Below are positions 2,852-55,105 of a stretch of 64,000 bases of DNA, piece by piece. The notes under the pieces are model-generated. The model saw only the letters and a list, made by a program, of their open reading frames with translations, did not search any database and was not told the origin of the DNA. Location: sequence record NC_061440.1, one strand, 5' to 3'. The translations under genes and the position numbers were made by a program. Every line of letters starts with the position of its first letter. The first letter of the stretch is position 1.

Positions 2852-5800
2852 TTACGCGGTACCTGAACCTGGGGTCGAAGAACCATAGGTCAGTTTAAAC
2901 GTATACGCCAGATTATCAAACGGGAAGTCGTTACGATAGACAACGTAATCAACACCATTGATAGTCACTTCGGCAGGACCAGCAAAGTTGAAGTCATCGA
3001 ACTCCAACGCACCATCCCATGAACCAGCGAAGCCTTGAGCAGACTCGACGAAGTAACCATAGCCCAGAGACTTCGGCCACGCAACGTAGAAGAACACGTT
3101 GTTCGTAGAGGTACTCGTTCCACCAGGACAGTTCAAGAGTTGCTGACCAGTCAGAGTCAACGCAGTTTGCAAACCCTGCACGAACGCTGCGTCATAACCA
3201 GAGACAGACTTGATCTTAGAGTGCCAGCCGAAGCGAGCGCCCAGGTCAGAAGACTGTTGTGGTTTGAGCGTAACGTCTTTCGTTGCAGTAACAGTCTTAC
3301 CGTTCTTGACATACGACACAGTGATAGTTACCACGGCATCAGCAGTCACAGCGTTAGACTTCAACGAACCGCCTACAACACTCAGGCCAGTCACCGTACC
3401 GGACTTCACAGCCACAGACCACGTTGTACCGCTATCCGCAGTAACGTCAGGTGTGGTGCCATCAGACAGAGTTGCCGTTGCAGTGTATGCAGTGGTCACG
3501 CCGCCAATGATAGAAGCAGGTCCAGTGATAACCACTGAGTCAGGCGTCGGTGGAGCTGGCGTGTTCGTTACAGTCAGGTTCGCAGTTTGCGCTTGGCTGT
3601 TATACGAAGCAGTACCAGTGATCACCGCAGTCTGAGTCGTGCTCACAGTGTTACCTGTGATGGTGTTGTTGCCATTGAACGTGAAGCCCGTAGTGGAGCC
3701 AGAGCTACGCGTTACAACAGGTGTCAGATCAACCGTCGTGCTATCAGAGAACGTCAGGCGCAGGATATAGGTACCTGTCTCACCTTTGTTCACAGCAGTA
3801 GGACCAATCAGCTCGCGCTTAGTGATCGTTGCTGCCTGATTGATAATCTGGATGGTCTTCTCTGGTGCATACGTTTTGCCGTCAACGACGACGTTAGCAG
3901 CACGGAGGATTACCGTCTGGTTCTGCGTGATGGAGTTTGGCGGTGAAGTCAACTTCGCACGAGTCGAAGTAGTACCAACACCAAGCGTCACATATGCAGC
4001 ACCTTGAGGCAATGACCAAGTAGGCAGAGAAGTGTACTCAACCTGCGAACCAGACAGACGAGTAATACGCACCAGATAGTCACCAGATGCAGTACCTTCG
4101 GTGATGCTGTCTGCGCCGATGATTTCTACAGTGCTCACGTCATCCGTAGGACCAGTGACAGTGAACTGAACGCTACCAGTCTTCGTTACGCTGCCAACAG
4201 TAGCGACAACGTTAAGCTGGAAGGTCAGAGTACCGAAGAAGCCAGTCAGAGCAGCTTTCGTACGGATGCGCCATCCTGTTGTTCCACCAGCAACAATCTC
4301 AAAGTAAGTTTGTGCATTAGAGGACAACGTATAGCTAAGTTCGCCGCTTGTACCCTCACGAGTAGAAGAATCAGAGAACGTCAGAGTGCTATGCAGGTCA
4401 CGGGTCACAGCCGCAGCGGTACCGTAATCAAACGCAGGCGATGGAGCCAGAGGTTGAACGGACAGCAGACTGATCACGATGATGTTTTTAACCAGCACAG
4501 ACTTCTGCGCGTTACGACCATCGTAAGTAGCACGAATCAGAACAGTGGTGTCCTGAGTCACTTCACCTGCCGACAGGATGCCCGTCTGCGCGATGCTTGC
4601 GATTGCGCTACCCTGAATGACAGACCACGTTGGCGCAGATACCTGACGCTCTGTACCGTTTGAAAGAATCTCCCACGCTGTAAACTGCGACGTGGTGTTT
4701 TCGTTCATCTGGTCAGCACCGCGAACTTCCAGTGAGGTCACAACCGGTGGATTACCAACGATAGTTACGCCCAGAGTCGCAGTCTTAGTGATACCGTTTT
4801 CAGTGTACGATGCGTAGATCGTTACGCTGGTATTTGCAATGTCTACTGCACCAGCAACAAGGTTGGAGTTGGTGAACGTTGCATAGTTCGACGGCTGCTG
4901 CAAGCGGAACTCGTTAGGAGTAATCGTCGCAGTGTGACCATCAGAGTAAGTAGCCAGCACGGTGTACGGTGTGGTGGTCTTCTCTTGTACGGACGACGGC
5001 CCAACAATCTTGATGCTCGACAGGTCAACAACAGGCACAACGTTCACGATAAGAATATCGAGTGTCGCGCTCTTAGTGATGCCGTTTTCCGTGTACGTTG
5101 CAGACAGCTTCACAGGAATGTCAGAAGACACTTTGCCTGCGTTAACGGTCTTGTTCACGATAGTCACAACATCCAGACGGTCGGCAGTGAAGGTCGTCGG
5201 GTCAATCAGCTTCGTGCTTCCGTCAGAGTAGGTAGCGAGGAACGTATAGTTCGCGCTTTCCTCGCTGCGGATTGTGTTCGCACCCTGGATTGCCAGAGAG
5301 GACAGCACAACAGCTTCTGTCTCTTTCAGAATCGTAACGTTCTTCGTGCCAGTCACTGTCTGGTCGGCAGTGATGTACGTTGCAGTCAACACAATCTGAC
5401 GGTCAGAGACAGTCTCTTTACGAGCCGTGACCACGTTGCCACTGATAGTGGTGTACGTTGTAGGTGCAGCCGTGAAGGAGTTCTGCGTAACCATTTCGGT
5501 ATCGCCGTTCGACCACGTAATACGGAACGTGTATGTCGCGCTCTGCTGAGAAACGATGGTAGAAGCACCAAGCACCTCAAGCTGAGTAATCAACTGCGCT
5601 TTAACCGTCACGTTCTTATTCGCCGTGAAGGTAACGCCGTTGTACACGTAGGTCGCAGTCAGTTTGACGACGGTATCGACAGAGACTTTCTTCGCAGTAC
5701 CCTGCAGGCCAACGAGGTCCAGAGCGTTTGCGTTATCAACCACGAAGTTCGTAGGCATGATAGTCGCAACGTTACCAGACTTGTAGCGAGCAGTGACGGT

Positions 5801-13499: not shown

Positions 13500-13508
13500 T
13501 ATTTACAG
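13500..13508 (-). promoter_or_regulatory. CTGTAAATA promoter-like motif
   Basis: Recurrent 9-mer directly upstream of a gene start. Confidence 0.55.
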
Positions 13509-53852: not shown

Positions 53853-54050
53853 TTAGGCAAAGCTCATCTCCCAACGCGGTACAACGCGGAAGAATTGCTT
53901 AAAGTGGGACGGTGGGTTCTGCTTGATGGACTCAAGTTTCTTTTCCACAACGTCATAATCTTTTATGCCACTCTCAACGCAGTGAGTGGTGAATGTACCG
54001 TCAGCCTCAATCAAATCGGCGACAACACGGTAGCTTGGTTTTCTCAGCAT
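53853..54050 (-). CDS. Hypothetical protein (65 aa)
   Basis: AGGAG SD; CTGTAAACA variant at 54090-54098. Confidence 0.7.
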   Translation of the reverse strand: MLRKPSYRVVADLIEADGTFTTHCVESGIKDYDVVEKKLESIKQNPPSHFKQFFRVVPRWEMSFA

Positions 54051-54124
54051 CTAGTCTCCTGAAAACGAAATTCTCATTGCTCTGAATTATGTTTACAGAT
54101 TACTGGAGTAGTCACAAAAGAATA

Positions 54125-54480
54125 AAGTAAGACAAATCTTAAACTCCAATAGGTACTCGCTGGAATTCCTATTGGAGTTCACCCTCAACCGATGACGGTC
54201 GGCAGAAGGTGTTCTCCCCGTGCTTTTCGATTGCACCAGCACGGTAGCGCTTGCGGTCTTACGCTCTTGTCATGCAGCGGGCCGGCAGGGATGGTAGCAT
54301 TTCCCGCCGCAAAGAGCAGCCGCTTTCGGCCATTAGCGATAACGCGGTGTTACGCTTAACGGCCCGACTCTGTGGCCGAGTCTGTACAAAAAAGAGTTCG
54401 GCCTATTCCCCAATTCGGCAAAAAGAAATAAGCCGAACTAAACAGTCAACGCACACTCCATATGCGCTGTTTTGTACTGT
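54125..54480 (-). ncRNA. Candidate large structured non-coding RNA (about 350 nt), family unrecognised
   Basis: At least nine stems I could trace by hand, with G-U pairs that work only in the minus orientation; a possible pseudoknot; CTAATTT motif 6 nt upstream of the first stem; U-rich 3' end; no credible ORF. Confidence 0.7.
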
Positions 54481-54483
54481 AAC

Positions 54484-54490
54484 AAATTAG
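54484..54490 (-). promoter_or_regulatory. CTAATTT promoter-like motif with no downstream ORF (would drive the candidate ncRNA)
   Basis: Recurrent motif. Confidence 0.55.
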
Positions 54491-54517
54491 AAACATCCTG
54501 CAATATTCAGACAATTC

Positions 54518-55105
54518 TTAGTTCAACATCGGAACGAGATTTTGCAAGAAATGTTTGCGATCAAACGAACTGATTCGGTGCGGATGATCGACGTGCATGT
54601 TCCATCCTTTGTTGAACAGCAGCACGTTCTTCGGCAGGACAACGTTAATGCCAACGCGAGTGAACGAATCACGAACGGCAGTCACTGGATTGTCGTCAAC
54701 CAGAATCCAAGTACCTTCACCGTACTTCTCGTTCAGGTAAGCAATCTTATCAGGATGCTGGCGTGAGTCCAGACAGTCGATGTGGTCAAACAACGACAGG
54801 TGCTTCTCCAACACCTTGCGTGTGTAGCGTTCACCTTTGGCGTGATAGCCACGATGCGTACAAATACCGACACTGAAACCGTCGCGCACCAGCATTGCAA
54901 CCGTTTGGATGAAGTAGTCACGCATGTTAGCTTCGAGCATGAAGCGACCGTCAGCCAGCATCTCCACGAAAGGTTCGTGACCATTCTCTGGCGTAATGTA
55001 CGTGTCGGTACCTGGGTAGATTCCCCAGTTCATCAGATAGCACAGCATGAAGTTATGCGTATCGAATGCCGTGTCGTCCATGTCGAAGAAAATATATTTA
55101 ATCAT
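54518..55105 (-). CDS. HAD superfamily phosphatase, 5'(3')-nucleotidase-like (about 195 aa)
   Basis: FFDMDDT, CTHRG, PDKI and LVDDNP; start moved to ATG 55105 (TAATG coupling). Confidence 0.85.
   Translation of the reverse strand: MIKYIFFDMDDTAFDTHNFMLCYLMNWGIYPGTDTYITPENGHEPFVEMLADGRFMLEANMRDYFIQTVAMLVRDGFSVGICTHRGYHAKGERYTRKVLEKHLSLFDHIDCLDSRQHPDKIAYLNEKYGEGTWILVDDNPVTAVRDSFTRVGINVVLPKNVLLFNKGWNMHVDHPHRISSFDRKHFLQNLVPMLN

Follow-up and report, generated by a model that had tools for sequence, protein, structure and literature searches.

A gene-free interval in a replication gene cluster encodes a structured RNA

The window analysed here, 64,000 nucleotides of sequence record NC_061440.1, comes from Erwinia phage pEa_SNUABM_22, an Alexandravirus of 265 kb (MZ443785), with which the region agrees at 100% identity. 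We focused on a 467-bp gap at window positions 54051-54517, unannotated in MZ443785, for which an initial annotation made from the sequence had proposed a discrete, strand-specific and highly structured non-coding RNA (ncRNA) of ~350 nt. The coordinates and sequences quoted in that annotation were all correct. The genes around the gap belong to a replication gene cluster and all lie on the minus strand. Upstream is the gene of a 195-aa HAD-like protein with a DxDDT motif (54518-55105, minus strand), whose PHROG matches are phrog_16292 and the phosphatase half of the 'polynucleotide kinase' phrog_415; downstream come a 65-aa gene (53853-54050, minus strand) and, farther on, a clamp loader gene (PHROG 5846, Pfam DNA_pol3_delta2) followed by an SbcC-like gene. 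The open reading frames (ORFs) flanking the gap are separate conserved genes that possess a stop codon, a ribosome-binding site and a promoter motif of their own.

A 376-nt RNA read from the minus strand of this locus folds at -154.8 kcal/mol vs a mean of -114.8 kcal/mol for 100 shuffles (z = -7.1), and the plus strand reaches a z of -3.8 only. The helices contain 135 G·U but only 6 A·C pairs (57 vs 4 in the 3' core, 78 vs 2 in the 5' and middle helices). Because an A·C pair here would be a G·U pair on the opposite strand, the RNA has the polarity of the minus strand, in agreement with the earlier claim that its imperfect pairs are G·U only when read in this direction. Three ORFs of 49-79 codons overlap the gap, and all of them are interrupted, by stop codons or by frameshifts, in relatives as close as 86-89% identity; we found no ORF conserved on either strand among the relatives compared, so that a small translated ORF was rejected. 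We also rejected a replication origin, there being no turn in GC skew. The location of the gap within a replication gene cluster could suggest an element acting at the level of DNA (an origin or a packaging site), but the lack of a skew turn and the 135-to-6 ratio, which indicates selection on RNA from one strand, make such an element, like a small protein gene, extremely improbable.

Covariation was assessed on two alignments. On A1, a plain MAFFT alignment of 21 gaps, RNAalifold predicted 88 pairs, 23 of them with compensatory changes, and the helices of the 5' and middle part were scored on this alignment from a hand-drawn model. The 3' core was scored on A4, which holds 19 distinct sequences from every lineage, was aligned by hand and was padded with N that MAFFT left essentially untouched. 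In A4, 94% of cells were paired and 21 of 32 pairs had changed on both sides; none of 500 shuffles matched any of five measures, and sliding the partners by 1-3 columns lowered pairing to 32-48%. Helix S1 of the core was recovered independently by RNAalifold on the MAFFT alignment (columns 316-319 with 333-336). Compensatory changes in related phages were thus present in the core and in the helices called H1, H2, Pb and Pc below. Together with the folding energy and the conservation of the gap, they support the original proposal, and the gap almost certainly encodes a real structured ncRNA.

The RNA is found at one genomic site in a clade of jumbo phages

Both the length and the sequence of the gap are preserved across 46 phage records, at 69-100% identity: 80-100% in Alexandravirus, ~71% in Sasquatchvirus Y3/SNUABM_52, and ~70% in an unclassified group comprising SNUABM_34/13/45/14/25/7 (hereafter S34). 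More distant homologues were sought with the neighbouring HAD protein and the clamp loader as queries, and the loci that could be reached were screened with nhmmer. Copies were found at the same syntenic site in Yoloswag, pEa_SNUABM_5, the Dickeya phages JA29/JA11/JA13/JA33 and Yersinia phage fHe-Yen9-02 (Yen9-02), as well as in the metagenomic contigs L057, L063 and L155. The shared gene order is peptidase, two further genes, HAD, RNA, the 65-aa gene where present, and clamp loader. The RNA thereby spans ~7 lineages, in phages whose hosts are Erwinia, Dickeya and Yersinia. It measures ~340-350 nt in pEa_SNUABM_22 and ~230-450 nt in relatives, and the window holds a single copy.

The syntenic site of PaBG, Lu11 and Alcaligenes phage Afa-NA1 has no such RNA. 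Exact-pattern scans of IMG/VR with three conserved motifs returned the same clade and one added contig (L155), the other matches being due to chance, and IMG/VR scans based on the HAD protein and the clamp loader gave no further lineage. A metagenome scan with the clamp loader yielded almost exclusively bacterial DnaX, and the first 120 matches listed in a genome scan with the core pattern were all chance matches. As far as these collections show, the family appears confined to one clade of Enterobacterales jumbo phages.

Two GenBank records carry protein genes annotated wholly within RNA homologues: gp204 of Yoloswag (L042, 3771-3935) and fHeYen902_106c of fHe-Yen9-02 (L044, 3765-3971). Both are probably false gene calls. 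In Afa-NA1, a 482-nt gap upstream of the clamp loader (L145, 2007-2488) contains at least 7 copies of a CAACTKAWAYGAG-like motif; these repeats may be promoters or iterons, and the gap has no relation to the RNA.

The 3' core contains an H-type pseudoknot

Only the ~130-nt 3' core occurs in all lineages. It consists of a GUAAGA junction, the 3' strand of helix Pa, a pseudoknot, a GGAG, hairpin Ph and a terminal helix. The pseudoknot (54218-54250, minus strand) is of the H type, with strands in the order S1-5', S2-5', S1-3', S2-3' and covariation in both helices. S1 (GCGCU/GGUGC, 54246-54250 with 54233-54237) is 89% paired with 5 of 6 pairs compensatory; S2 (CCGUGCU/AGCACGG, 54238-54244 with 54218-54224), already listed as a stem in the initial annotation, is 100% paired with 6 of 7 pairs compensatory. 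Loop 1 has a single nucleotide; loop 3 is A/U-rich and has 7-9 nt (AAUCGAAA at 54225-54232). Both helices are rewritten from lineage to lineage. S1 reads ACGU/ACGU in Y3, GGCGCG/CGCGCC in Yoloswag, GGUGCG/CGCACU in JA29, AGUGCC/GGCACU in mg63 and AGCGC/GCGCU in Yen9-02, and the corresponding S2 helices are CCUGCAC/GUGCAGG, CCCUC/GAGGG, CCCGC/GCGGG, CACGC/GCGUG and CCUCU/AGAGG; by eye, L155 has GGUGUG/CGCACC and CCCAC/GUGGG. A possible pseudoknot had been part of the initial annotation, and the RNA does have one supported by covariation, but it is not the one proposed: CGGGCCG/CGGCCCG crossing GCUCUU/AAGAGC is 60% paired, no better than shuffles, and fails already in Alexandra.

Directly 3' of the pseudoknot lies GGAG (54214-54217, minus strand), followed by hairpin Ph (54180-54211, minus strand) with a lower stem CACCUUC/GAGGGUG, an upper stem and a CCGUCA hexaloop (54193-54198). 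The prediction of this stem with an inner one held up, with 5 of 7 lower-stem pairs compensatory, and Ph keeps GACCGUCAUC unchanged throughout Alexandra, Y3 and S34. The terminal helix (54142-54179, minus strand), predicted as a stem of 12 bp, is 96% paired and has 7 invariant and 5 compensatory pairs. Its proximal part, ACUCCAA (54172-54178) with UUGGAGU (54143-54149), is identical in all 19 sequences, and the distal pairs covary. Beyond it, an A/U-rich conserved tail, UAAGAnUnnUCUnACUUUA (54123-54141, minus strand; invariant columns of A1), lies at ~-38 to -60 from a promoter-like site at 54086-54115. This tail may form the RNA's 3' end or, as DNA, serve the next promoter as an upstream element.

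The hexaloop hairpin A-CCGUCA-U caps Ph in Alexandra, Y3 and S34, and the loop reads CCGACA in Salmondvirus-like phages. In the Yoloswag lineage the A-CCGUCA-U hairpin is found in the middle domain instead (L042 ~3846-3868, with equivalents in L057 and L059), and its stem covaries there. The relocation suggests a movable binding module. It also bears on an alternative in which the RNA acts in trans as a decoy or sponge, without any switch, its invariant loops and helix serving as binding sites that sequester a host factor (an RNA-binding regulator, a ribonuclease or a defence sensor). Such a decoy would fit a hairpin that is retained but moved, as expected of a modular binding site; invariant elements (GUAAGA, the CCGUCA hexaloop, GCUACC and ACUCCAA/UUGGAGU) set amid covarying helices; and a distribution confined to phages of Erwinia, Dickeya and Yersinia. 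No partner is known, however, no repeat architecture is seen, and GGA occurs ~6 times in 350 nt, a chance level unlike that of CsrB/RsmB, so we consider a decoy quite unlikely. A CsrB/RsmB-type sponge for CsrA in particular was rejected on our own count of these near-chance GGA motifs and on the lack of an Rfam match; only the loop of hairpin H1 resembles a CsrA site.

Two GGAG elements could compete for one CUCC

The GGAG that follows the pseudoknot could pair with CUCC at 54173-54176, within the 5' strand of the terminal helix. This element is GGAG in 17 and GGGG in 2 of the 19 distinct sequences, and is complementary to CUCC in all 19. In the Salmondvirus-like phages and Yen9-02 the GGAG:CUCC pairing is contiguous with Ph (UU:AA, UA:UA), and matched changes go with it, seen by eye as UAUCU/GGGUA, UGUUC/GGGCA and UUUCC/GGGGA. 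When folding was constrained to mimic the nascent RNA, whose 3' strand has not yet been made, the GGAG:CUCC state was obtained in 10 of 10 sequences tested. The same 10-11 nt recur within the 3' strand of the terminal helix in JA29, JA11, mg63 and Yen9-02, but not in L155, and this strand could displace Ph. If CUCC had to remain able to pair with each of several GGAG elements, this would explain why the 7 proximal base pairs are invariant while the other helices all drift. From these patterns, an exchange of GGAG partners as the working mechanism seems possible but doubtful.

The middle domain and the 5' module carry further covarying helices

The middle domain (54253-54323, minus strand) is closed by helix Pa (GCGG/CCGC, 54320-54323 with 54253-54256), invariant in the 21 relatives and, by eye, covarying across lineages (GCGAGG/CCUCGC, GGCGAG/CUCGCC, AACGAG/CUCGUU, AGAG/CUCU). 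Inside it are Pb (GCUCUU/AAGAGC, 54312-54317 with 54263-54268; 80.2% paired, 4 compensatory pairs), which confirms a stem of the initial annotation, and Pc (GCGGCGGG/CCCGCUGC, 54303-54310 with 54274-54281; 93.5% paired, 5 compensatory pairs), together with a conserved loop GCUACC (54293-54298) and the nearly invariant junction GUAAGA (54257-54262), all on the minus strand. Pc takes the place of the proposed stem GGCGGGA/UCCCUGCC, which is 43% paired. Another proposed stem, GGCCG/CGGCU, has no covariation, is disrupted in 5 of 21 sequences and competes with supported helices. We also rejected a long-range pairing of GUAAGAC with GUCUUAC of the tail, which is perfect here but meets GUCUGAC, with a G·A mismatch, in most relatives and is lacking in other lineages.

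Two stems lie 5' of the middle domain on the minus strand. The longer one (GGCC..AGCG/CGCU..GGCC, 54328-54364) has a conserved loop, GUAACACCGCGU, which stays unchanged where the stem differs (Y3, CAGUG/CACUG; S34 group, CAGCG/CGCUG). In pEp_SNUABM_52 (L016) this otherwise invariant loop carries a 10-nt tandem duplication, GTAACACCGC, at A1 columns 186-195. The short hairpin GACUC/GAGUC (54366-54382) is present by eye in the 21 relatives, with no covariation seen; A1 is shifted at this place for pEa_SNUABM_22, and helix counts are invalid for this hairpin.

The 5' module comprises helix P0, hairpins H1 and H2 and a U-run, all read on the minus strand. The 5' strand of P0, GUACAAAA (54470-54477), pairs with UUUUGUAC (54384-54391). 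This junction stem, as first described, does not vary among the 21 close relatives, and in Yoloswag it reads CGUAACAAG/CUUUUUACG, with two double, compensatory changes seen by eye. H1 (CGCAUA/UGUGCG, 54447-54469) is 100% paired with 3 compensatory pairs, and H2 (54395-54439), with a stem of 15 bp, is 92.7% paired with 6; both had been predicted. The loop of H1 is AUAnGGAGU, and its GGAGU is also present in the Yoloswag and Yen9-02 lineages. After H2 come the U-run and GUAC, the 3' strand of P0 (54384-54393; A1 columns 134-149). The U-run itself (54388-54393; A1 columns 134-139) counts 6 residues here and 6-12 among close relatives. H2 has the features of an intrinsic terminator, namely a G+C-rich 15-bp stem, a C and then U6-12, and termination at it is predicted; a simple terminator scan missed H2, whose loop exceeds 8 nt.

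The module of H1, H2 and U-run is present in five lineages and missing from the Salmondvirus-like ones. This raises the alternative of two units, with H1 and H2 forming a terminated small RNA of 95 nt and/or the terminator of the peptidase-HAD operon, and the 3' 250 nt a separate RNA or a processed product. H2 with its U-run is indeed the first terminator-like structure past the HAD stop codon, and the Salmondvirus-like phages keep the 3' core without H1 and H2. On the other hand, the stretch from the U-run to the 3' domain contains no promoter motif, and the conserved P0 pairs across the U-run (GUAC...GUAC), which argues that functional molecules extend beyond it. We therefore hold a division into two units to be decidedly unlikely.

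Promoter-like motifs set the RNA apart from its neighbours

Two classes of promoter-like motif, almost entirely on the minus strand, occur in the window: CTGTAAAT before replication and repair genes, and CTAATTT. A copy of the latter (54484-54490, minus strand) lies 6 nt upstream of P0 with no ORF behind it, as the initial annotation had pointed out, and because of this the RNA looks like a transcription unit of a class apart from its replication neighbours. Of the 13 occurrences of CTAATTT in the window, none is on the plus strand and 8 lie 24-71 nt upstream of ORF starts (one endolysin-like, seven of unknown function). Its sites include 14592, 33895, 37512, 38387, 45447, 46359, 52358, 54484 and 62073, and a TTGTCTGA element stands upstream of it, at variable spacing, at 54484, 52358 and 45447. 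The evidence for this motif is positional rather than numerical, since a 9-mer version with one mismatch allowed is not enriched in the window. It precedes the RNA in every lineage but fHe-Yen9-02. In Salmondvirus-like phages it overlaps the last HAD codons (...S-N-L/F-stop; L043 ~3553-3570, L063 ~2655-2673, L155 ~755-773). By its position, we take the copy at 54484 as the putative promoter of the RNA, and calling it late-type, as was first suggested, is plausible.

The downstream limit of the RNA is marked by TCTGTAAAC (54091-54099, minus strand), which lies outside it as the promoter-like motif of the 65-aa gene. That the next gene has such a motif of its own had been noted before, and it falls in an enriched class: TCTGTAAAY occurs 10 times in the window vs 1.15 expected, and sits 8-40 nt upstream of the DNA polymerase, clamp loader, SbcD-like, HNH and 65-aa genes. 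Minus-strand sites of this class lie at 13501, 22824, 32183, 39541, 40062, 53750, 54091, 58790 and 59913, and the Lu11 record annotates the same motif as 'putative middle/late promoter'. CTGTAAA directly follows the RNA in five of six lineages. The clearest indication that the RNA has a self-contained gene comes from JA29, L063 and L155, where a canonical terminator (GGGAACC..., a GC-stem with U8-9) and then CTGTAAAT come after it. Phages of this group reportedly have no RNA polymerase of their own and depend on that of the host together with phage sigma factors (PMC7412058); intrinsic terminators should therefore work in them.

These signals bear on the possibility of a leader that acts in cis, whether as an attenuator, as a riboswitch-like sensor or as an RNA for processive antitermination. 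Transcripts starting at CTAATTT would then stop at H2 and its U-run, or at the terminal helix and U-rich tail, or enter the 65-aa, clamp-loader and SbcC genes, with the pseudoknot deciding. The terminator-like H2 with U6-12 is kept in five lineages, the 3' end has pairings that may be mutually exclusive, the Alexandra-type terminal helix is followed by UUUAAGAUUU, the downstream genes are all on the same strand, and Yoloswag has no CTGTAAA between the RNA and the next ORF; all of this would suit a leader. Yet the enriched CTGTAAA stands directly after the RNA in the other five of the six lineages, and in JA29, L063 and L155 a strong constitutive terminator separates it from the clamp loader. 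Moreover, the terminal helix of the Yoloswag, Salmondvirus-like and Yen9-02 lineages lacks a U-tract, H2 is missing from the Salmondvirus-like RNAs, and the RNA exceeds known attenuators in size and number of domains. A cis-acting leader is accordingly an unlikely explanation.

As regards the neighbouring genes, the conserved 65-aa protein gave a confident model (beta-beta-alpha-alpha-beta, pLDDT 88.8), for which the fold search returned nothing significant (best E = 0.23), and it reaches the threshold of no Pfam family; the weak matches at the top of the fold search are small inhibitors from phages, phi29 p56 for example. We rejected it as an RNA-binding partner because the predicted model shows no RNA-binding fold. 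No packaging gene was found among the neighbouring genes examined.

The RNA matches no known family

At the gathering threshold, the 4227 models of Rfam 15 gave no match in the whole window, and at E <= 10 only chance-level matches appeared in 53900-54700; no match was obtained in the Y3, Yoloswag, JA29 and Yen9-02 loci either. ARAGORN detected no transfer RNA (tRNA) or transfer-messenger RNA (tmRNA) in the window. The absence of tRNA and tmRNA hallmarks noted at the outset is thereby upheld, and so is that of group I/II intron hallmarks: we rejected an intron since there is no Rfam intron match, the flanks are separate genes and no exons of an interrupted gene adjoin the RNA. A self-cleaving or otherwise catalytic RNA might be suspected from the compact pseudoknotted core and its invariant unpaired nucleotides, but with no Rfam ribozyme match even at E <= 10 and no flanking exon or mobile-element context a ribozyme is very improbable. 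We found no description of the RNA in the literature on these phages and on phage structured RNAs. Judged by these searches, it is a previously undescribed family.

Several known systems offer partial likenesses. Large orphan 'ornate' ncRNAs such as GOLLD and ROOL, the subject of a cryo-EM study (PMC12286853), are often borne by phages or prophages. The present RNA resembles these in being phage-borne, with many helices, a pseudoknot, strong covariation, no ORF and a function that is unknown; it differs in its lack of an Rfam 15 match, its size (~350 nt vs ~580-800 nt), its occurrence in Enterobacterales jumbo phages and the absence of any sign of oligomerisation. SAM-II and preQ1-II/III are riboswitch aptamers in which an H-type pseudoknot sequesters the Shine-Dalgarno sequence. 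They share with the RNA an H-type pseudoknot, with an A/U-rich loop 3 crossing a G+C-rich stem, and right after the pseudoknot a GGAG with alternative partners. Here, in contrast, the pseudoknot is one of ~10 helices, there is no Rfam match, no ligand is known, and a promoter motif, or a terminator and a promoter, separates the RNA from the next ORF. Of the features of a riboswitch or cis attenuator, the RNA has a conserved structured domain that could be a sensor, given the covariation of the core and of the 5' and middle parts, but not the leader position free of intervening promoters and terminators, with CTGTAAA in five of six lineages and a terminator plus CTGTAAAT in JA29, L063 and L155.

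Among stand-alone phage RNAs, the structured phi29 pRNA works in a protein machine and forms rings through intermolecular loop-loop complementarity. The RNA described here is likewise stand-alone, structured and phage-encoded, but it has no adjoining packaging gene, another architecture and another type of phage; in an unsystematic look, the best candidate for loop-loop complementarity was a 4-nt CGCG in one loop. The P1/P7 c4 and P4 CI immunity RNAs, of ~70-80 nt, are processed by RNase P and act on defined targets in temperate phages. As in these, one element of the RNA is complementary to repeated segments of the same transcript, including a sequence like a ribosome-binding site; unlike them, it comes from a lytic jumbo phage, is longer and has no target gene identified. 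Finally, an IMG/VR catalogue of candidate phage structured RNAs follows the same discovery logic, that of a conserved phage intergenic region with covariation; its motifs measure 29-151 nt, and individual hairpins of the RNA might be among them (Fremin et al. 2023, PMC10690425).

A probable stand-alone RNA that may act in trans

The explanation we favour, at slightly less than even chances, is that of a stand-alone, trans-acting structured RNA whose pseudoknot core would serve as a binding platform, possibly with a GGAG/CUCC exchange. The gap would hold a gene for a multi-domain ncRNA, running from ~54478 to ~54130 on the minus strand, placed within the replication cluster but served by a class of promoter-like motif unlike that of its neighbours. 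The product would act in trans as a folded regulatory RNA that binds a protein or a ligand at the pseudoknot. As its output, strands would be exchanged: the GGAG after the pseudoknot and a second GGAG, on the 3' side of the terminal helix, would compete for the one CUCC, exposing either a Shine-Dalgarno-like or an anti-Shine-Dalgarno-like element. That the RNA is an independent trans-acting unit is probable; trans action, the toggle and any target are what we infer from its structure and setting.

Several observations weigh against this explanation. The terminal-helix state is 4-11 kcal/mol more stable in constrained folding, the GGAG:CUCC pairing has no compensatory change, and, as for the extended alternative helix of the 3' strand, L155 has lost it and none but JA29, JA11, mg63 and Yen9-02 form it perfectly. 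H2 with its U-run resembles a strong intrinsic terminator ~95 nt after CTAATTT and, as host RNA polymerase is reportedly used, a full-length RNA would need read-through. Nothing points to a partner protein; the 65-aa neighbour shows no RNA-binding fold, and its gene is missing from the RNA site in Salmondvirus-like phages. A4 was hand-fitted to the structure, so that the counts for the core are biased towards it, and the promoter and both ends of the transcript are deduced from sequence patterns.

Jumbo phages are annotated largely as hypothetical proteins, and their ncRNAs are almost unexplored. Here, an RNA of ~350 nt with ~10 helices, a well-supported pseudoknot and no Rfam match is kept at one genomic site in ~7 lineages, and conservation at this level implies a function needed by the phage. 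The finding corrects existing annotation, with ORFs called within the RNA in two GenBank records, and it provides a compact, experimentally tractable new fold, for which mutation and rescue of the pseudoknot and of GGAG/CUCC would be the handle. Since several of the phages that carry it are under development for the biocontrol of fire blight and soft rot, an essential-looking element also has practical value. It is conceivable, if unlikely, that the family represents a new functional class of phage RNA, in which a pseudoknot sensor or ribonucleoprotein core, expressed from a promoter that is not of the replication class, would time late development through an exchange of Shine-Dalgarno-like and anti-Shine-Dalgarno-like elements, or would neutralise host RNA-directed defence in Enterobacterales jumbo phages.

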